This document shows, in pieces, positions 47,701 through 62,980 of a stretch of 64,000 nt of DNA (position 1 is its first letter; every line of letters starts with the position of its first letter). The DNA lies in NCBI GenBank assembly GCA_021613535.1, contig CP075493.1, forward strand, positions 11,284,001 to 11,348,000, written 5' to 3'. A model generated the notes under the pieces. That model was not told where the DNA came from. It saw only the letters and a list, made by a program, of their open reading frames with translations, and did no database searches. The translations under genes were made by a program, and so were the position numbers. This stretch comes from Adineta vaga. Its lineage: Eukaryota > Animalia > Rotifera.

Positions 47701-50700
47701 GATTTAACATAAATCTATCAATATTTATTGTTTATTTAGTTCGCATTTCAATTGCAAATGAACTTTGAACATGGAGAAACTCAACTACATAGTTCGATGA
47801 AAAATATAAGTGTTTATAGTTCTAATTTTCTTGAATTGAAAGATTCAAAAATCATATATCATGTGAGAAAAATGTTTTTATCGTTTTGCTGCATTCTTAT
47901 TCTATTTTATGTCTTTCTCTCCAGATTTTACAACCGATGAATATTGATATTATTTCAAGGATGAATTCAATGGATCAGTGCATCGATGTAAACATTAAAA
48001 GTATTCATATAAATCTTTCTCCATCAGTTATTCAATTAATTGTCAATTTGATGAATTCGATTGATAACTCTCAGACGACAAGTTTTGTAACTGATGTAGA
48101 TAAAAAAGTGAAAGTACAATCTACTTCTTTGTTCGATCCAAAACCATTTAAAGATGCATCATTTTGGTTTCTTACCGGTTTGTTTCATTTATCTTTAAAT
48201 CGTGATAAGATTGTTTGTTTCAGGTGCTGAAATCGAACAGGAAATGGTCGAACAGAGAGATATCTTGGAAATGGCAACTGGTACTCCTACACAAAAGAAA
48301 GATTCAAATGAAGAAAACGAAGAAGATGATAAACCAAAACAGACAAATGAAATTCATCGCTCGCAAAAAGTATTTATCTAAAAGACATCTCTATAGTTTT
48401 TCATTCGTCTGGATGTCTATATTTAGTTGAAATTTGATATGAAACTCGTTGAAATGAGACTTGAACTTGGTTCAAAATCAATTGTTGCTTTATGTCTATC
48501 TAATCTATGTCTTGATGTCAAAAATTGGTCGAATGATGTAAGAGTTTCCTATACAAATAGATATAGTATAATGAGATCTTGATTCTTTCCTTCTCTTTAG
48601 ATAAATTTTTCTTCAAGAATTCACATTGAATTAGCTGTATTTAATGATCATATGCTCGCTTGGATTCCATTGATTGAACCGGTAGTGGATAAACGTGGTG
48701 AAATAGTCTCTCCGTGGTATATCATATGTTCGACTCAAACTAATAAAAATGAGGTACAATGAGTTCATTTTCAAAGTGATTTTTATAATCTTTCTCTCTA
48801 CTAGTATCCCATTGAAGATAAACGATTGAAACGATCTCAAAAGGTATATCTAGTTGATTCTATGAGAAGAGAGAGATCGATGTTTTCATTTTTCCTCTTC
48901 AGGAAAGTTGTTTAGGTCGTCGTCAAAATTCATTATCAACTATTGAAGAACATTCAAAAGATATTACAGATTGTCTCAATGCAAAGAAAAAATTTCATAT
49001 TCGAGCTGAAAATTTGCTGAATATAACATTAACAAAATCAAGTTTTGATTTGATAGAACGACTCACAACTGTATTTATGAAAGCTTATAATAACAAACTA
49101 TCAAAAGATGACGATATTGAAGATAAATCGATATTGTCTGTACACAATCTTACTGGTTATGAAGTTCTTCTTGATGATATCAAAGATATGGAGATAGATG
49201 AGATGCCAATCAAACTCAAGTATAAAGATTCCATTGCAATGAAAGTGCCAAAAGAACGATTATCTTCTACTCATCTTCCTGATATTGATGATCAAATCAT
49301 TAAAAGACAACAAGAGTTTTCTGTTCAATTGAAGATTAATAATGAGAAGACAAAAGTAGATGTCAAACATACATCAAAACGAGTTTATCCATTGAGTTCA
49401 TCCTCTATACCAAATTGGCCGATTGAGTTACATTGTGATTCTCACATTCACAATAATCAACGACGAGTGATTCTTAGCTCTATTGTCAAAGTAAACTTTT
49501 TATATTTCATCAATATACTCTACAAATTGATTCGTTTTCATTTAGATATATAATCGAACTACCTTTCCTCTGTTCATCTTAGATGTTGATTCAATCGAAA
49601 CAAAAAATCATCGTACATTATGTCGACTTGATGCAAATGATGAATGCTATCTTCCCATTGAACCTTTATATATGCGATCAAGTTCTCGTCTATTTATTAG
49701 CGTAGATGAGTAAGACATGAATTGATTGTTTTGTTTGTTAATGAATTGTTTGCCATTGATAGGAATGATTTTATTTCATTTGATTGGAGAAATGAAACCA
49801 TACTCGATCGTAGATTGAAGATGAAAAATGATGTAGAAATTCATCTTGTCGTAAGTGAGTTGTTAAATATGGATTGTATTTGATATATGATATATTTAGA
49901 TATTGAAAGAAACGATAAAAGCATTTTCTGAGAATACAGATGAATCCAGTCGAAGTTGTTTTCATATTTATATTAATCTTGCTCTTCATCTAATCAATCT
50001 TTTACCAATTGATGTTCAATGTTCAATTGATGTAAATATTATTTCTTTTTCTTCGACGCTATTCAATTATTTGATGTATGTAGCGTAACAAACCAATCGA
50101 TTTAAAACCAAGTGAATTGTATAATAGTATTTCCGGTACCAAACAATCTATACTAACTTTCATTGTATGTATAAATTCATCGTATTTCTCATTTCTATAA
50201 AAAAGAGTATCATCTACAATAGATTCCATCATATAAAAATATAAAGTGGCTTTCAGAACCAGTTGACTTAACTGAAAAGGGTCATGGTAATCGGAATGAA
50301 CATTTAATATTATTTCACGGATTTGAATCGCAAGATGAATTGGTATAGATTTTTATTTTTATGAAACATGTTTATAATTAAAAATGTTATGTTCTAGACA
50401 ATGATCTTACGTGTAGATATATATCAAGAATCATTTCGTGCTGCGTTATATTCACCATTTTGGATCATTAATTGTACGAATCTCAAACTTGAATTTAAGG
50501 TTAGTTGATTTGGTTATTTCTAAGTTTTGTTTCACTGTATTGTCGTATAGATTGATAACGAGGAGACGCTGATTGATGTTTGTAATACGCCATTTCTTGT
50601 TTGCCCAAAGAAAATTGATAGTGATGTATATAATAAAAAGGTTTGCTTCAGTAATTTCATACAGAAAACAACGATAAAATAGATCTTGAAACCATTCTAT

Positions 50701-53700
50701 AGGCTCATCTTCGTGTACATGGTGTCGACGAACATGATTGCATTTCTCATTGGTCAAAAGAATTCACTCTATACGTGGTTGCAAGTACAGGTATAGCAAA
50801 TTGCAAAATGTCGAATGATAGAACTTATATGGTAAAATTGAATCATTAAGTAATAAATGAAAACGTTTCTTTTAATTTTTTCAGATCTGTGTACATATAA
50901 CAACAACTTCGTTTTGTATGTCGAAGATTATCAAACTTTCGTCATCTATGGCTATTATTAATAGATCAATAGTATCGATTATCTTTCTATAATCTCACAC
51001 TTATTTAGAATCATGTTTGTTTAGATGGATCTTGAAGTTAGTGAACTAATAACTGAAACTGAACAGAACAATTGGCATTTGATAAAATCAGAACAAGTAA
51101 AAAATTTTATCTATGAAAAAAAGTCGAGTTGTATTTTCAAAAAATTATACTTAGATAATTCCATTCTGGCCACATAATATCAAAGACGGTGCTATGCGTA
51201 TTCGTTATGTAAAGAATCGTACAGCATCATCATTGTTGTTTCCAATGTATGATCGACATCGAACATTATTAAGAATGAACGATGCAGATTATCCAGCTAT
51301 TCATGTTGAAGTGACAATTATTGAAACGTTAGGTATTCATATCATTTTCAGTGATTATCAAAGTGGTGATGCACCTCTTCTGTTACTTAATTGTTTGAGA
51401 AATCATTCCATATTATACGGTCAAGAAGAAGATGATAGGTAAGTTTCTAATATTGTCTTTTCACACTATTACCACTCTATGTAAATATTAGACAAACGCA
51501 CGTTTTACCATCACAACATTATGTTTACTATACATGGAGCAATATATTCAAATCACGTAAATTAACTGTTTCATGCAATGAACAAGATATAACACTTGAA
51601 CTTCGTGTAATTTTCTTTTCATTCTAAATATTATCATGAGAAAAAGATTCATTCTCGTCCTTTAATAGTCTGTTTATGGTTGTCTAGAATCATCAAACGG
51701 AGATCGTATATTCTATGTAATATTTCATGATGGTCCTCAAACGATCTTGATCTTTGCTGAAGAAATATCGATTATCAAATCAGTTTTAAATGTGAGTTAT
51801 CAAGTTTTTCTTTGTCTTGAAAATCTAATCCGATAATTTAGCTTGCCAACGAAGAAGGCTCGTCGAATGAAATAATGGATCAATATATTGATATAAGTTT
51901 TCATGATATTAGTTTATCAATTATTAATGATATTACACATGAAGATCTCGTTTACATTACTATAAACAAATCGAAACAGATTTGGACTGAAACACAAAAA
52001 TCTTTAATAAAACCACTTTCAAATAAACTTAATCGTCAGCTAGAAAAAAAATATCGAGTTCATTTGAAACAACATCGAATGAATTCGAATAATGACACAG
52101 AATTGGAAAGAAAAACATTCCATATTGGTGGACATCGTGTAAGTTTTGTCAATTTAGTTCCAAGAGATATATCATTATCATTTATAGCGTGCTTCATTCA
52201 TTGAAAATACGGCTGAAATCATTGATCAAAATGATTCTCGAATACAAATTCATCGGCAAGCTCTGGATGGATTATGGATTCGATGGAGTTGGTCAAAGAC
52301 TAATACAGTTTATCATCTTCGTATTAATCATATTCAAATTGATAATCAACTGGAATATACATTACTACCAGTGGTTCTTCGTCCAATGACTTCATCGTCA
52401 GTAGAACAGCCATTTATTGAATTGAGTGCTTCGAAAATCATCAATACTCGATCGAAAACAATGTATTTCAAGTATGCAATATATTTCTCAATCGATTCAT
52501 TCTAATAATTTGAAAATAATCATTTAGATATTTCAAATTAACGTGTCAAGAATCTCTCATATGTATTGATCAAGGTTTAATTAACGCATTTCTTATATTC
52601 ATCGACACAGAAAAGGTTAGTTTTCTCTATTTACATCAATGAAAGCTTATATCTAATATGACATTTTTAGAAATCGACCAAATTGACCATTGATATGAGT
52701 CATGATTTGAAAGCCATTCAGAAAACATTCGAAACACTTGTGGAAAAACAGTCGATTGAAACAAAGATATTCTTTGATTGTATTCATTTCTCTCCACTGA
52801 AAGTAAATTATTTTCCTCAACAAAAACTTTTCTATTCAGTTTCTATTCTCCAGATTCATATAAGTCTTTCACCAAATGGAATAAAACCAGATATATTCAT
52901 ACTCGCTGATTATCCATCGATTGAATATTTTGTACAAATATTGGACTATGTTAAAGTACACGATATTATATTAAAGTAAAATCAGTTGTCATGAAGAAAT
53001 GATTGTATATTTTTTGAGTATGTATTTAATATAGATTAGATTTCTATGAACGAGAAAAAGATCGATTTACAATCAATAAATTAATCGATGAAATTTATGA
53101 ACATTATTTTGAACAACTTTGGAAACAAGTTTATGTTGTTATTCTTGGCCATGATTTACTTGGCAATCCTTTTGGCATGGTTCGTGAAGTTGCTCATGGT
53201 GTTAAATCATTTTTTCATGAACCGTTTAAAGTAAGACATAGTTATTTAGTTTTGATTTGATGTAATGAAATGGATGGTTTATTTTCGCTGTTTAGGGTGC
53301 GATGGAAGGTCCACTTGGATTTATTGAAGGAGTTGCAATAGGTACCGAACATTTAATTGGCTCAGCTGTAGGAAGTGCTGCTGGTGCTAGTTCAAAACTA
53401 ACTTATGTGATTAGTAAAGGTTTAGCAACATTAACATTTGATAAAGAGTATGCAAATGTTCGTAATCAACGTAAAAAATTAAAGACACAAACAGCATCGG
53501 ACATTGTTGATGGTGGAAGAAATCTTGCTAAAGTATTTTGCATGAAATATTCATGTTTCTATATTCAGTTGATCTCTTGAATAGGATTTTGTACATAGTG
53601 TAAAAGATATTGTTAAAAAACCAATAGCAGGTGTCAAAGAAGAGGGTGCATCAGGTTTAATGAAAGGTTTAGGTAAAGGTTTGCTTGGTGCTGTTGCACG

Positions 53701-54513
53701 ACCAACAAGTAGTGTTGCTCATCTGACTAGTACATCATGTGATGTACTTAAAAGGTAAAATGTTTTTTAATTCAAACTGTTGATTTGGATACAAACGGTT
53801 TTTTCTATCCATTCCAATGTAGAAAGGCGACTCATGCAGAGATTGTTCATCGTACTCGACGTTCACGTCATATTGGAAGTGATTATATTATTCGACCATC
53901 GACAGTTGATGAAATGAAAGGACGTTTTATTTTTAATGTAAGTTTTAAATAAAAAATTAACTTCTACTACGTGATTCTAGTATTCTTCTGTGGTTTGTTA
54001 GAGACTTGATAATAGCAAGTTCATAAAAACAGATGATTATATTGCTCATATGATTTGCTATGAAAATAACGAATTTGGTTGCTTTTTAGTTACATCAAAG
54101 TAATTTTTCTTTTTCTCTTTTTTTCTCTATTGATTATGATTTATTCGTAGACATATACTATTTGTTAAAGAGAAAATATCAACTTCAGATGATTATGAAG
54201 TTGAATGGCATTTTCAATACAAAGAATTAAAAGGACTACCCATGGTTAAATTTGATTCTAATCAGATTGTAATTAACTTAAAAGTAAATGGAATTTTGAT
54301 TTCATTTCTAAAATAAAAAGTTCTATCATCATTTAGGAACCAACACTACGTCGAAGAGTTAATAGACATCGAGAACATGAAAAGATCATTACTTATGAAA
54401 ATATGAGTGAAGCTCGAGTATGTTATTTTTACTTTTATCTTCTAGAAATTAAGTTATCTTTTTAGTATATTGTCGATCAAATTACGGAAATAATGCAGTC
54501 AATGGAACTATAA
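41717..54513 (+). CDS. VPS13: VPS13 (VPS13A/C-like) bridge-type lipid transfer protein, dozens of short introns
   Basis: Chorein_N start MVFRSIVSYFLDKYLGDYIENLD..LNLWQ|GDVVLEDLYLK, NLQISISNIHLAFED..HPFAFGITL, WKFAYTAI, WIPLIEP, YSPFWIINCT, QIDNQL...LPV, LLGNPFG, KPIAGVKEEGASGLMKGLGKG. Exon boundaries were not all verified. Confidence 0.88.
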
Positions 54514-54602: not shown

Positions 54603-54981
54603 GTTACCAGAGTGTGTATTTCGGTAGAGGAAAAGAACAAAACTATGATCGAACATTCCATTTGTAAATTAAGCTTTTACGATTTTGACGTGTTTGCATG
54701 TTTCCTTGACATCGTTGATGATTGTTTCACTCTTTTTCCGTTCCGATCGATACGAGGAGTGACACTTCAACTTTGTTTCACATCATTTGATCCGATACAG
54801 TAAAGTGGAAAATCAAATTAAACAAAAATATTGTTCATGTCTATTCATATTATTGTGCGTTAGTAAGAACACAAAATAGGTCGTATATTTCATGAGTAAC
54901 TGGTGCAAATAGTTGTTTGTTTAACATACGATTATCGTTATATCTTCAACGTCATCATCGAAACGTCTACTCAAAAGTAAT

Positions 54982-56191
54982 ATGAATATTTGGATTAATG
55001 ATGTCAATAGTAATAACAATAAGCAAAATGCATCAGTTGCACCAAAAACAGGAATGTGAGTTTCATCAATTAAGTTCATAACTTTGTTCGAAGATGTCAA
55101 TTACTCACTGATTTGATATTTTTAGATCGTCAGTTGAAGCTAGTACAATGAGTCCTTTTCAACGTTTATTATTACCAATAAGTCGTCTAAGAATTATCAG
55201 ACGATTGACGGCTATATATCCTTCTAGGAGCATCTTGCATGGACGTTCAGAAGTATGTAAATATGTGGATAGAACAAACACCATAACTATGCATTCTTTT
55301 TTTTTGATAGATACCAACGTCAATATCACCAAATGAAAAGTAATTGAATCAACAATCAATCATTACGAAACTATCTTTCTGCATTTATAATTTTTTTACA
55401 GATTTGTTAGTGAACAACTGATTGAAAATATCGATCATATAGGTATTCTTGGCCTTCTATTTGCTGCTTTTGTTGCTGCTATTATTCTTGGATTTTTCAG
55501 TTTAATCTTTAGTTTACAATCTGGTAAGATATCATCTTTAGATAGATAGATTTATTGATCTTAGAAAATTTCGATTATTCTAGAATTACCAACTGGTACA
55601 ATTCTTCTCTATAGTGGACCTTCATCGGCCTTATTGGGCCAAGATGATCGATGGCTCTTCTGTAATGGTTCTGAAGTATCTCGAAAAACCTATCGAAGAT
55701 TATTTGATGTTATTGGTACTATATATGGTATTGGTGATGGTGTCAATACATTCAATTTGCCTGATCTTCGAGATCGGTTTCCATTGGGTAGTACTCTAAG
55801 TAGTGATGTGGTAATGGTTGCTGGTGGATCTGCAACGCATGCAATTACTGTAGCCGAGATGCCTTCACACAGTCATAATCAAGGATCCTTAAAAGCATCA
55901 AACAATGGTACACATACACATTCGTATACTGATCCAGGACACGATCATGGCGGATTAACAGGTACTGAACCTCTGGGTGTTGGTACTGCAGCAATGGTAA
56001 ATTCTGGTACTCCTGGTAATGGTGATGGTACACATAGTCATTCGATTTCTACCGATCAAATAGATATAGTAATTGATACTGATGGTAATCATACTCATAC
56101 CATTAGTGGATCGACAGGTGCAGCAGGATCAAATCAACCTATGAGTCTGATACCACCGTATCAAACAGTACATTATATCATTCGAACGTAG
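54982..56191 (+). CDS. Predicted type II membrane protein with phage tail-collar domain and HxH-repeat tail-fibre tip, 319 aa (exons 54982-55055, 55126-55252, 55311-55339, 55402-55523, 55584-56191)
   Basis: Four GT-AG introns give one open frame (960 nt). TM helix IGILGLLFAAFVAAIILGFFSLIFSL. Collar motif LPTGTILLYSG..WLFCNGSEVSRKTY..LFDVIGTIYG.GDG..TFNLPDLRDRFPLG. Then GGSATHAITVAEMPSHSH, five HxH motifs and PPYQTVHYII. Confidence 0.85.
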
Positions 56192-56652
56192 AAAACTGCC
56201 TTTTCTATCATGAATATTTTTTATATTAAACATGAAAAATTTTCTTTTTGATGTTAAAAATAAAATGCTGAAATTGAATTCGTTTTTTTCTCATGATTTT
56301 TGACATAGAAATTGTTATGTTGGAATTCATTTAAATGTTCTTTAAGCATATCATTCTTATTCACACTTCGAGTAAAAGATAATACTAATATATGTTTTGG
56401 TTCTGTGAGAGTCAGTAAATTTAAAGAAATCTAAGATTTCTAACCTAAACTTCTGTTTGCATAGTTTCCTTCTCTTATTTACTTTTTTCTGTTGTACAGA
56501 AGAGTTTTTGAATTAATTTTCTCGATCAAAAGTTAAATATGATGGACATAGAGAATCAATACTGAAAAATAAACTCGTGCATATACTATTGTATTTAACT
56601 CGTCGATGGATTCAATCATTGAAGTCTAGTAGATTGCATCAAATAGTATCCA

Positions 56653-58932
56653 ATGTTCCAACTTTCCACCATAAAATTTCTTTTTCTTTCTCTAACTGGG
56701 ATCGCATCGGTTCAAGTTGGATCGATCAGAAACGTTTTTTTCTTCTCGCCTTCTGCTACCACTGTATCAATGAATGGATCATGTGATGTATGTTTTTGTT
56801 CTATGATCTCGTCGAACAATATCATTGGTCTTAGTTGTTCACAAAATGAAACATGTTTATTCTTTTACAACTACTCATTGTCCTACACGCTCGCTAGCGA
56901 TTTAAATAAAAGTTTTCACTTTCTTATTTTGCCACATGAACAACAATATTCTACGTACAAAACAACTGAAGTACTACCAACGAGTGAGTTATATAAGTTA
57001 AGTTGAATGTGAATAAGAAGTTATCTTTGTTATAGCGGTGATCACTACTACAGCTGTTCGTAAGTAGAGAAATACGGATTTATTTAGCCATCAATCCTTA
57101 GTTCGACATCCTTGTTTTTAGAACTAATAATAAATGCTTCACGTACTTTCTTTTTTTGTATGCAATGTAGAAATTTGTATTGAATAGAGTCATTGGAAGC
57201 TATCTTCTAGAAAAATTAAACACCTTTGAGATATTGTTGTCTAAAGAGATAGAAACGAGCATATTTTGATAATATGTTCTTGTATTAAAAGTGTCCAATC
57301 AGCTAACGAATAATTCTGTATGGTCATCAACAGGCGAGACAGTAGCTGGTACTGGCTCGATTGGATTGGCTGCTAGCATATCATTGACTGGACCAGGACC
57401 TATCGTCTTTGATGTTTACAACAATCTGTACGTCAATGATTATGGCAAGCATCGGGTCGTTTTATTTCCAAGCAATGGATCTGCGCCAAAACTCATCGCT
57501 GGTAATGGAGTAGCAGGAGCAGCAATGTATCAACTAAATTCGCCAAACGGTATCGATGTGGATACTACAGGAGCATTGTATGTAGTAAGTATAATGTATG
57601 GTCATCTAAAATTCAGATCAGTTGGACTAGACTCGAGGATGCCCATTAAAATCGTTTTTTCGTTGTTTGTCCTATTTTTTTTTAATAGGCAGATCAAAGT
57701 AATCATCGAATTCAAAAATGGTTTCCTGGAGTATCGAATGGAACAACAGTAGCTGGAGTAACAGGCACTAGTGGATCAAGTCTAAATCTATTAAACAAAG
57801 TTAGTTCACTCTTTTCGAATGTGTTGTTTTTTTCTGAAAAAATACGTATCAAAGCCATAGATTGATATTACAAATCTATCAAATACGAAAAAGGGTTGAT
57901 CAAGCTTGAATCATCTATGAATGGCATTTTTGTGAGAATAGATATACATTGAGAGCAAGAACATATCTGTGCCTAGTATGAGATGGAGACATGAGAATTG
58001 ATCTTGTCGTGATTCCTCACTGTTAACCTCATATCGAATCAGCAAAAATGCAGCGATTATAATAAATAACTCGTATTCCATTCTTTTTCTGTTAGCTCAA
58101 AGTGTTACCGTCGATGTTGCTGGCAATATGTATATTTCCGATAGCGAAAATCGTCGAATTCTCAAATGGCCAGCAAGTGCCTCTCAAGGTATTGTAGTTG
58201 CTGGTAAGCACAAAAATCAAACTGCATGCGAGTGATGTAAGAAAGACTTTTCGCTCTTCCTATTAACATTGATTCTTTTTTGCAATTTTCATGAATAATG
58301 AATATATATCATTGTAAATAGGAGATGGATCGAGTGGTACATCTCTCAATAATATCGGTTATGCATATGATGCGAGAGTCGGCCTAGGTGGTAATGTATA
58401 TGTGCCAGATTTCAATAATGGGCGCGTTCTCAAGTGGATTTCACCAGCATCGTCAGGTGTTTTAGTTGCAGGACAAACCAATAGTCCTGGATCGAGTTCT
58501 AATCGACTAGATAATCCTACACATGTCGTTTTGGATTCGGATGAAAATATTTATGTGTGCGACTACAGTGAGTATCTTCAATCTACTCATTATAGATCAT
58601 TGATTCTATAAAAATCTAAATAATCAAGCAGTTCCATAGAATCACGAACTAGAAAATTTTTTGATAGCAGATGTGTGCTGAAAGTAGTTATCGTATGAAC
58701 TAATACAATATTTCCCTTCATCATTCGTTTTCTTTTTCAAGATAATCATCGAATTCAACGATGGATCAATGGAGCATCTGTAGGTTCTACGATAGCCGGT
58801 AATGGAACAGCTGGCGCAAGCATTAGTCAATTGAATCATCCATATGGTATCACTTTCGATATGTTCAATAATTTGTATGTAGCGGATTCCGACAATAACC
58901 GCATCCAACGGTTCAATTTAACATTTCCTTGA
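56653..58932 (+). CDS. Secreted NHL-repeat beta-propeller protein with Cys-rich N-terminal domain, multi-exon
   Basis: Signal-like MFQLSTIKFLFLSLTGIASV, then a C..C.C...C...C module. NHL repeats QLNSPNGIDVD, NRLDNPTHVVLD..IYVCD, QLNHPYGITFD..LYVADSDNNRIQRF. Confidence 0.75.
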
Positions 58933-60601: not shown

Positions 60602-60966
60602 ATGAGTACTTCACCAAACTCTGTAAGTTATTTCTTTAGGGAAAAAATTTCTTTTTCTTACGCTTTCTATTCATTTGAAAGGCCGTTGAACAAGTAACAC
60701 AAACCTTGACCTATGAAATTGGTCTTGATGTAGCTCTTGCTGGTTTCACAAAAAACCCAATTGAGTATGAAAAATATAGTGCTAGTGCAAATGCTACAGC
60801 ACGTCATTCATATGGTGTTGGACCAGATGTTGGAATTGGCGCACCAAATGTAGCAAGAAAAAGTGAACAATACGATCCAGCTGCTGCTATGTTCGATTAT
60901 GCTGATGTGAATCATGATGGAGGCATTGATCAACAAGAGTTTGGTACTTTAATGCGATCGCTTTAA
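60602..60966 (+). CDS. Small (~101 aa) protein with a C-terminal EF-hand (intron 60623-60681)
   Basis: MSTSPNS|AVEQVTQTLTYE...; canonical EF loop DVNHDGGIDQQE flanked by helices. Confidence 0.7.
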
Positions 60967-61714: not shown

Positions 61715-62830
61715 TCATGAATCAATTGAAATTGAAAGATTTGTGCTATTGAGATGAACATATGGATAAAATTCGTTGATATTTAATTCTTTTGATAGAT
61801 AGAAAGCCCACTTGTCTTCTATTTGATCTTGAATACGAAATGTAAAATAACGATGATGTGTATCAAATAATAAATCTATATATGAAACTTGAATCAATTC
61901 ATTTTTTGGCTGCTGTGGACATTGAAATTCGTCAATAGGCCAAGTGTACGGACGAGCCTTTTGACAAGGCTTTTCAATAGTACCATCAAAGACGTTCAAA
62001 AGCCATGTTTGTCGTTGTTCGTTCATAAATATAGAAGGCTTTTGTATCTTATCTTTATAGATGATACCGACTGAAAGAGTACCATCACTTACAGATTCGG
62101 ATAAATGTACATTAAATCGAATTGTCTGGTAGCGTTTATTTTTCGAGAGAAAGCCTTTATCTACAGACGCAAATACTTCATGTGAATATGTTTTATTAAC
62201 ATATCGGACCTCAGAATTGCCGAACATGCCATGATTAAATCTTCTACTATTCTCATCTTGTACTTCCATAGTATAAGTTTCACAGCATATTGTACGATTG
62301 TTGTTTGAAAATTTGATATGATCATCGGTTGAATGATTTTGAAATTGAATTTCGTTTTCCCAGAGAACTGAAAGTTTTGTCGCATAATCAAAGCAATCAT
62401 TAATATGGTATTCTAGTTGTTCAAGGCGTTGTCCGTGTTCTTGAATAATATTTTCCAATCGAATAATATCATCAAGTCGAATACAATCCAAATTAAACTG
62501 CATGTTAAATGAACGTGATAGGCGTCCAAAATTAACAATAAGAATCACATTTAATACTACTTTCGAACCTTGTTCTATTATTTGAAGATTTTTATCGGAA
62601 CATTTTCCATCATTATCGATCAGTTCATGGATTAATTCAACCAAATGCTCACATGTTTCACAAGCACCTTGTGTCATATTCAGAACTGCATCTTGATCGA
62701 TCTCCGTTCGATAGATTCTTTTCGTTTGCCGATGTTCAGCACCAATTGTTACTTTTGATTGAAGACAATGAACATCAATCTTATATAGTTGAAGAAGATT
62801 TTCATCAGGTTGAAACTCGTTACACGACAT
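61715..62830 (-). CDS. Intronless protein of unknown function: globular N-terminal head, short coiled coil, SPRY/B30.2-like C-terminus
   Basis: Long ORF with heptad LDDIIRLENIIQEHGQRLEQLE. The C-terminal beta-rich region has SPRY-like elements (FSNNNRT, LSVGII, IDLLFD..., FYPYVHL). Confidence 0.55.
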   Translation of the reverse strand: MSCNEFQPDENLLQLYKIDVHCLQSKVTIGAEHRQTKRIYRTEIDQDAVLNMTQGACETCEHLVELIHELIDNDGKCSDKNLQIIEQGSKVVLNVILIVNFGRLSRSFNMQFNLDCIRLDDIIRLENIIQEHGQRLEQLEYHINDCFDYATKLSVLWENEIQFQNHSTDDHIKFSNNNRTICCETYTMEVQDENSRRFNHGMFGNSEVRYVNKTYSHEVFASVDKGFLSKNKRYQTIRFNVHLSESVSDGTLSVGIIYKDKIQKPSIFMNEQRQTWLLNVFDGTIEKPCQKARPYTWPIDEFQCPQQPKNELIQVSYIDLLFDTHHRYFTFRIQDQIEDKWAFYLSKELNINEFYPYVHLNSTNLSISIDS

Positions 62831-62980
62831 TCTTTTTTTCTTCTTTATCTTATGCTCAGATAACATTCCTTTTTATATTAGAAGACAAGCAAAAGTTTAT
62901 TTAAGATATGACTGACTATTATATCCATAATATTTAGACTATACACACAACTTACGAGAAAACGAGAAAAAAACTGATTG

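Follow-up and report, generated by a model that had tools for sequence, protein, structure and literature searches.

The locus studied here raises the question of what an animal might do with the tip of a phage-type tail fibre. The window, the 64,000-nt stretch of an Adineta vaga contig that was analysed and to which coordinates refer unless another contig is named, contains a forward-strand gene in which a tail collar and needle module is joined to a membrane helix. Three questions follow: (i) whether this is a working animal gene, (ii) where the module came from, and (iii) which way it faces and what it binds.

Addressing the first question, we identified five coding exons, all on the forward strand. 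The coding part of exon 1 (54982..55055) contributes 24 Asn-rich codons and is followed by exon 2 (55126..55252, with a second Met at 55148), the 29-nt exon 3 (55311..55339), exon 4 (55402..55523), which encodes an acidic flank and then a transmembrane (TM) helix, and exon 5 (55584..56191), which carries the entire collar and needle module and the stop codon. The exons sum to 960 nt and encode 319 aa with no internal stops. The four introns (55056..55125, 55253..55310, 55340..55401, and 55524..55583) measure 70, 58, 62, and 60 nt, have GT..AG ends, and lie in phases 2, 0, 2, and 1. Every joint is present in spliced contigs from public runs, in agreement with the preliminary description, which had proposed four canonical introns. 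Specifically, a single 722-nt contig of X1 (54852 to 55823) spans exons 1 to 5 with all four introns removed, and all four joints are present in contigs of X3. The splice check also found the joint from the TM exon to the collar exon, likewise proposed at the outset, in a contig of X2 from a second study, so this joint is spliced in three runs from two studies. One low-depth contig of X6 retains intron 1. Because GT..AG introns are cut out precisely, the contigs are transcripts; the RNA status of the runs is otherwise presumed, and such contigs give no expression level, tissue, or induction. The 5' untranslated region covers at least 54852..54981, counted from the start of the spliced X1 contig, and an ATG scan of it returned an upstream ORF of six codons at 54892. 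Candidate polyadenylation hexamers lie at 56225 and 56259 (56225..56264), and the X2 contig stops at 56226. Five amino-acid-changing differences in transcript contigs, at 55324 T>C (I72T), 55773 (D181A), 55794 (T188N), 55818 (V196A), and 55970 (P247S), are probably alleles or strains.

Searches and fold prediction were made exon by exon, and the joined protein was spliced solely for checks of frame, hydropathy, and charge. The only hydrophobic segment found by the hydropathy scan, which stood in for a dedicated predictor, is the 26-residue TM helix at residues 90 to 115 (55439..55516; Kyte-Doolittle value 2.78 across 19 residues), and the same scan found no signal-peptide-like start (best 11-residue value 0.52). 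The product thus has the N-terminal tail and single TM helix without a signal peptide that had been described. A 16-residue Arg-rich motif lies in the tail (55175..55222), and a linker of three residues leads from the helix to the collar. Within exon 5, PF07484, the collar domain of phage tails (55595..55783), scores 69.1 bits (E 3e-19; cut-off 24), and a Gp10_C match sits right at its cut-off; collar, Gp10_C, and fibre-repeat are the only Pfam matches of the gene. Five HxH motifs follow at residues 213, 228, 237, 268, and 287, and their spacing of 15-9-31-19 is maintained across bdelloids. Motifs 1 to 3 (55868-76, 55913-21, and 55940-48) lie on an outgoing needle strand (55868..55948), motifs 4 and 5 (56033-41 and 56090-98) on a returning strand (56033..56098), and between them is a variable tip loop (55952..56032), the predicted ligand-binding head. 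The module ends in a PPY..V.YII motif (56153..56182), which forms a confident strand in the model and, by analogy with gp37 of phage T4, may close the collar. The collar, the five HxH motifs, and this C-terminal motif therefore do share one exon, as first noted.

An orthologue in A. ricciae lies directly behind the same VPS13-like gene and has introns 2 to 4 at identical places. Exon 5 is 78-79% identical between the two species, with dN/dS of ~0.14 at dS ~1; dN/dS is ~0.2 for the TM exon and ~0.1 for the Arg-rich exon-2 motif, which is identical at 14 of 16 residues and is conserved as well as the collar. The start of the protein differs. In A. ricciae the frame over the exon 1 region contains a stop, lacks an ATG, and is non-coding, so the first 32 residues of the A. 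vaga protein have no coding counterpart there; the A. ricciae protein begins at an early exon-2 Met, five codons upstream of the second Met of A. vaga. Judged by these substitution ratios, the gene is under purifying selection. The open frame and the dN/dS of 0.14 at dS ~1 rule out a pseudogene, and contamination or a prophage was rejected from the spliced introns, the chromosome-scale contig, and synteny with A. ricciae. The gene contains introns and sits between VPS13-like and NHL-repeat genes on an 18-Mb contig, not in a phage or prophage tail module, and its product is not a virion part. The proposal of a horizontally acquired collar and HxH tip that has been domesticated is upheld by splicing, transcription, purifying selection, and synteny.

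The surroundings were also described. The 3' end of the VPS13-like gene (49800-54512, forward strand) is spliced in the same runs and lies ~340 nt upstream of the collar transcript. One model in the A. ricciae annotation wrongly merges the collar gene with VPS13; a genuine fusion was rejected, given that the VPS13-like gene ends in a stop of its own near 54512. No contig spans 54546-54818 between the two genes, a gap that alone is no proof. Downstream on the forward strand are an NHL-repeat gene (56653-58932) and an EF-hand ORF (60706-60966); at the NHL position A. ricciae has IIGP-type GTPase genes and then an EF-hand gene. A 383-aa intronless ORF on the reverse strand (61715-62866) has no Pfam match.

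Every test that could be run places the module in the collar/HxH fibre-tip fold family. In the monomer model the collar has pLDDT of ~90-97 and the C-terminal strand is confident, and the needle has pLDDT of 50-75, a weak prediction that is to be expected if the chain needs the trimer in order to fold. Foldseek matched this model to the cyanophage A-1(L) fibre (8kec, E 2.5e-6) and T4 gp12 (1ocy, E 1.8e-4), and more weakly to the T4 gp37 tip (2xgf, E 3e-3). The gp37 collar is built from the start of the module and its very end (PMC12724248), and seven iron ions are bound by the HxH motifs of gp37 (PMC11705849). By analogy with gp37, the rotifer module would have its two ends at the membrane, with the loop that separates HxH 3 from HxH 4 directed away from it. 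Trimerization, metal binding, and bacterial binding are likewise predicted by homology.

Conservation among bdelloid rows is lowest in the tip loop (0.27), followed by the neck (0.37), and reaches 0.48-0.57 in the collar, needle strands, and C terminus. Four of the five HxH pairs are 99-100% conserved, among them the His of the outgoing strand, and the remaining pair is ~74% conserved. Between two A. ricciae copies, six of nine nonsynonymous differences fall inside the 27-codon tip loop (binomial against an even spread, p ~3e-4, on small numbers), and tip-loop dN/dS is 0.17-0.78, never above 1. Such a distribution is what one would look for in a structural needle that carries a specificity loop. 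The near-invariant His could also be read as a sign that the needle mainly handles metal, binding iron or zinc at a surface for scavenging, withholding, or luring siderophore-bearing microbes with no recognition at the tip, and a role as iron ligands has been suggested for phage HxH fibres (PMC11705849). We consider this quite improbable: the variability of the tip would be left with no explanation, the metals of gp37 serve as staples buried in the structure, and about five ions per trimer would make a poor store.

To place the gene in a family, we searched the 100.8-Mb genome (six contigs) and identified at least 10 collar genes. Three are TM-anchored, namely the present gene, L007, and L008; the last was rejected as a syntenic duplicate, since neighbours within ~10 kb are not shared. 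Six others (L001-L005 and L009, at G000:C5:16647979, C1:4079130, C1:13000450, C1:16592890, C4:808726, and C5:2527977) have a large N-terminal region before the collar, which in five is an uncharacterized domain of ~430 residues and in L009 a more divergent version. Signal-peptide-like starts are visible in L002, L003, L004, and L009. L188 is a further paralogue, short and secreted, whose collar is of a different and shorter kind and is split by an intron (L188:3520-4110). At L014 (G000:C4:808726) the collar is retained and the entire HxH needle is lost, and the coding region of L003 is broken by a short-period repeat (L012:5100-6150; G000:C1 about 12999100-13000150) that is either an insertion or an assembly artefact. 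Two of the paralogues have counterparts among A. vaga records: P0009 is identical to L008, and P0121 matches L002 at 100%. The best named homologues are all from bdelloids (Adineta, Rotaria, and Didymodactylos), whose family entries carry the automatic UniRef name 'Phage tail collar domain-containing protein'.

For the collar-needle module we built an unrooted maximum-likelihood tree of 80 rows and 193 columns, from which a few near-duplicates and two bacterial rows, long or partial, had been set aside. Amid rows from viruses and bacteria, those of bdelloids all fell into a single clade (100/93). Within it are subclades of the TM type (100/90, Didymodactylos included), the large-domain type (97/95), and the short secreted type (100/98). 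The simplest reading of this tree would be a single old acquisition and then diversification of architecture. One protein, P0033, carries the short secreted tag in the trees because of a weakly hydrophobic start; its place is with the TM clade, and the call probably runs into an intron. Seven TM-clade loci have in common an AG acceptor in phase 1, two bases ahead of the first collar codon. This would fit exon shuffling, the mechanism first suggested; a search of the genome gave no donor gene for the tail or TM exons, so the intron may instead have been gained following fusion.

The large domain of the secreted paralogues has no Pfam match and no clear structural match (best Z 7.3). In L002 it contains a Gly/Ser-rich alternating hairpin reminiscent of pore-formers. 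A toxin-like nature was tried and dropped: similarity to pore-former features was sub-threshold only and, with no clear fold match, the label is unsupported by test. In three other bdelloid proteins (P0214, P0227, and P0173) LamG and FG-GAP domains take the place of the collar beside the large domain, or the large domain follows an AIG1-type GTPase; this suggests that it pairs with swappable binding modules. Fusions of the same domain to a different collar (P0299 at L025, P0310 at L026 and L027, and P0282) occur in a tardigrade (XP_055329265.1), where the gene range exceeds the coding length and implies introns, and in bacteria outside prophages. The collars of these fusions fall outside the bdelloid clade, and on this ground we rejected a derivation of the TM type from bacterial fusions.

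With regard to the second question, related modules occur in named phages at ~30-35% identity across most of their length, in a P2-like tail operon, in many bacterial genomes, and in viral contigs. Another comes from a contig of 22% GC that also encodes Hsp70 and glycosyltransferases and in our reading looks like a giant virus, and virophages also have collar fibres (PMC12724248). The preliminary description named a phage as the source. With homologues spread over phages, prophages, bacteria, and a giant-virus-like contig and no supported sister group, a phage is one candidate among several for the direct donor, and 'viral or microbial fibre tip' is the safe wording. Two AT-rich homologues with a DPGH needle register, one of them from the 22%-GC contig, adjoin the bdelloid clade, weakly, with support of 81 in a quick tree. 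They bear on a further reading, in which a fibre captured from a giant virus or virophage occupies the viral receptor and acts as an antiviral decoy or receptor blocker, like endogenous envelope genes. We rate this as highly improbable. The grouping is slight, secreted large-domain fusions suit targeting more than blocking, and to our knowledge no giant virus of bdelloids has been described.

The third question turns first on topology. A single TM helix with no signal peptide may insert in either direction. The preliminary description proposed a type II protein with the collar outside; in its favour are the one helix, the missing signal peptide, and the flank charge difference (C minus N) in the relatives, which is -0.5 to -5 in nine of the nine other TM members, a type II bias. 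Several of these members also have a juxtamembrane Cys. The flank charge difference of this copy is opposite, at +1.5, and that of its A. ricciae orthologue is +3.5; in both, an acidic flank lies N-terminal to a long TM helix, and under the charge-difference rule the reverse orientation is favoured for the pair.

This copy might be inverted (type III, with the N-tail translocated) or organellar, with the Arg-rich start serving as a mitochondrial presequence, in which case the needle would be a metal-binding trimeric scaffold in the cytosol or intermembrane space. The acidic N-flank and the 26-residue helix are kept in both species, and the conserved N terminus of the pair is targeting-peptide-like, being Arg-rich and, from the exon-2 Met, acid-free for ~30 residues with an amphipathic moment of ~0.75. 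We nonetheless regard this arrangement as unlikely. A basic tail of 60-90 residues should resist translocation, and in A. vaga a 32-residue in-frame extension precedes the basic motif. L021 and L195, which have the same collar acceptor, have basic N-flanks. The module of each orthologue carries three N-glycosylation sequons, of which two differ in position, and sequons exceed shuffled expectation in bdelloid modules (1.27x) and not in non-bdelloid ones (0.85x), in rows that are related and so not independent. The secreted relatives with signal-peptide-like starts indicate that the module works outside cells in the rotifer. On balance, the needle of the present copy is probably outside or luminal, and of that probability we would assign slightly more than half to a module that binds microbial surfaces.

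Our best explanation as a whole, held tentatively and at somewhat under an even chance, is a type II trimeric needle at the surface or in the lumen that binds microbial glycans. The product would be a single-pass membrane protein with its collar-needle module facing the cell exterior or lumen, and three modules would assemble into a trimer. Each chain would leave the collar and return to it in the style of the gp37 tip, and at each level the HxH pairs of the three chains would hold one metal ion, about five per trimer, giving a rigid needle. The distal variable loop would then bind a microbial surface glycan, such as LPS, and the secreted relatives in the family would use a tip of like kind in soluble form. 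A study of fungal infection is neutral on induction: neither 'collar' nor PF07484 was matched in its supplement (200 of 206 files, some partial).

Alternatively, the needle could be outward and trimeric and its ligand non-microbial, such as the animal's own glycans, mucus, body wall, or substrate, with a role in adhesion or structure. Selection is strongly purifying with a tip dN/dS not above 1, three TM paralogues per genome are few for sensing microbes, and the collar sits directly on the membrane behind its short linker. These features suit such a role, which we nevertheless think not very likely, as the differences cluster in the tip and the ancestral role of the module is the binding of microbial surfaces (PMC12724248), as it is for the T4 fibres.

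The family as a whole may be read more broadly. Bdelloids might have taken up the viral needle once, before the split of the sampled lineages, and built from it a microbe-recognition kit of membrane receptors (this gene among them), soluble binders, and secreted effectors, in the last of which the needle would aim the large domain. We put this forward as a speculative possibility that falls short of even. Should it hold, it would be an animal recognition system with a phage-type adhesin tip as its binding site, and a tip that binds microbes would be a new scaffold for pattern recognition or food capture in animals. The gene also tests whether foreign genes give bdelloids recognition functions beyond enzymes, and the question of the ligand is readily testable with a module of 201 residues, a single compact exon, and a narrow variable loop.

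Overall, this is an expressed, conserved, domesticated gene whose architecture is new relative to the literature searched, in which no paper was found that treats genes for collars or tail fibres in any animal, bdelloids included; a 'virus tail fiber assembly' term (PMC11258130) denotes RNA ligases. The same order of collar, HxH needle, and C-terminal closing strand is seen in T4 gp37 (2xgf) and gp12 (1ocy) and in the cyanophage A-1(L) fibre (8kec), with matches in sequence as well as in fold. Unlike these, the rotifer module occupies a single exon of an animal gene with spliced introns and is anchored by a TM helix rather than in a virion; its tip loop is unrelated and it has no fibre shaft. 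It has five HxH motifs, compared with seven in gp37.

Beyond tailed phages, the tripartite tail proteins of the virophage DSLV2 are trimeric and combine a collar and gp37-like needle with a variable head, and a virophage collar fibre binds Synechococcus cells, is blocked by anti-LPS antibody, and binds cyanobacterial LPS in ELISA (PMC12724248). This gives an experimental precedent for LPS binding by such modules outside tailed phages. The DSLV2 proteins form a capsid-attached viral heterotrimer, and unlike the rotifer protein they are not encoded by a host gene and have no membrane anchor. The nearest precedent for an animal membrane protein with a domain related to phage tail appendages is MYRF, which also trimerizes (PMC3742443). 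The MYRF domain is a tailspike chaperone that acts by autocleavage to release a transcription factor, and is not a receptor-binding tip. The two proteins share no domain; neither the tailspike chaperone (ICA) nor the DNA-binding domain of MYRF was matched by Pfam here.

Animals have reused viral fusion proteins, and we know of no description of a receptor-binding fibre tip reused as an animal cell-surface protein. In manner of working, the rotifer protein may be compared with the class A scavenger receptors (SR-A and MARCO), which are trimeric type II membrane proteins that bind bacterial surfaces through the far end of a long ectodomain. The likeness is one of analogy and not homology: Pfam matched no collagen, coiled coil, SRCR, or C-type lectin domain in exon 5, and none was seen in the short upstream exons. 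With its type II orientation and bacterial binding both putative, the rotifer protein would be a capture or pattern-recognition receptor that resembles a class A scavenger receptor and is built from a viral adhesin.
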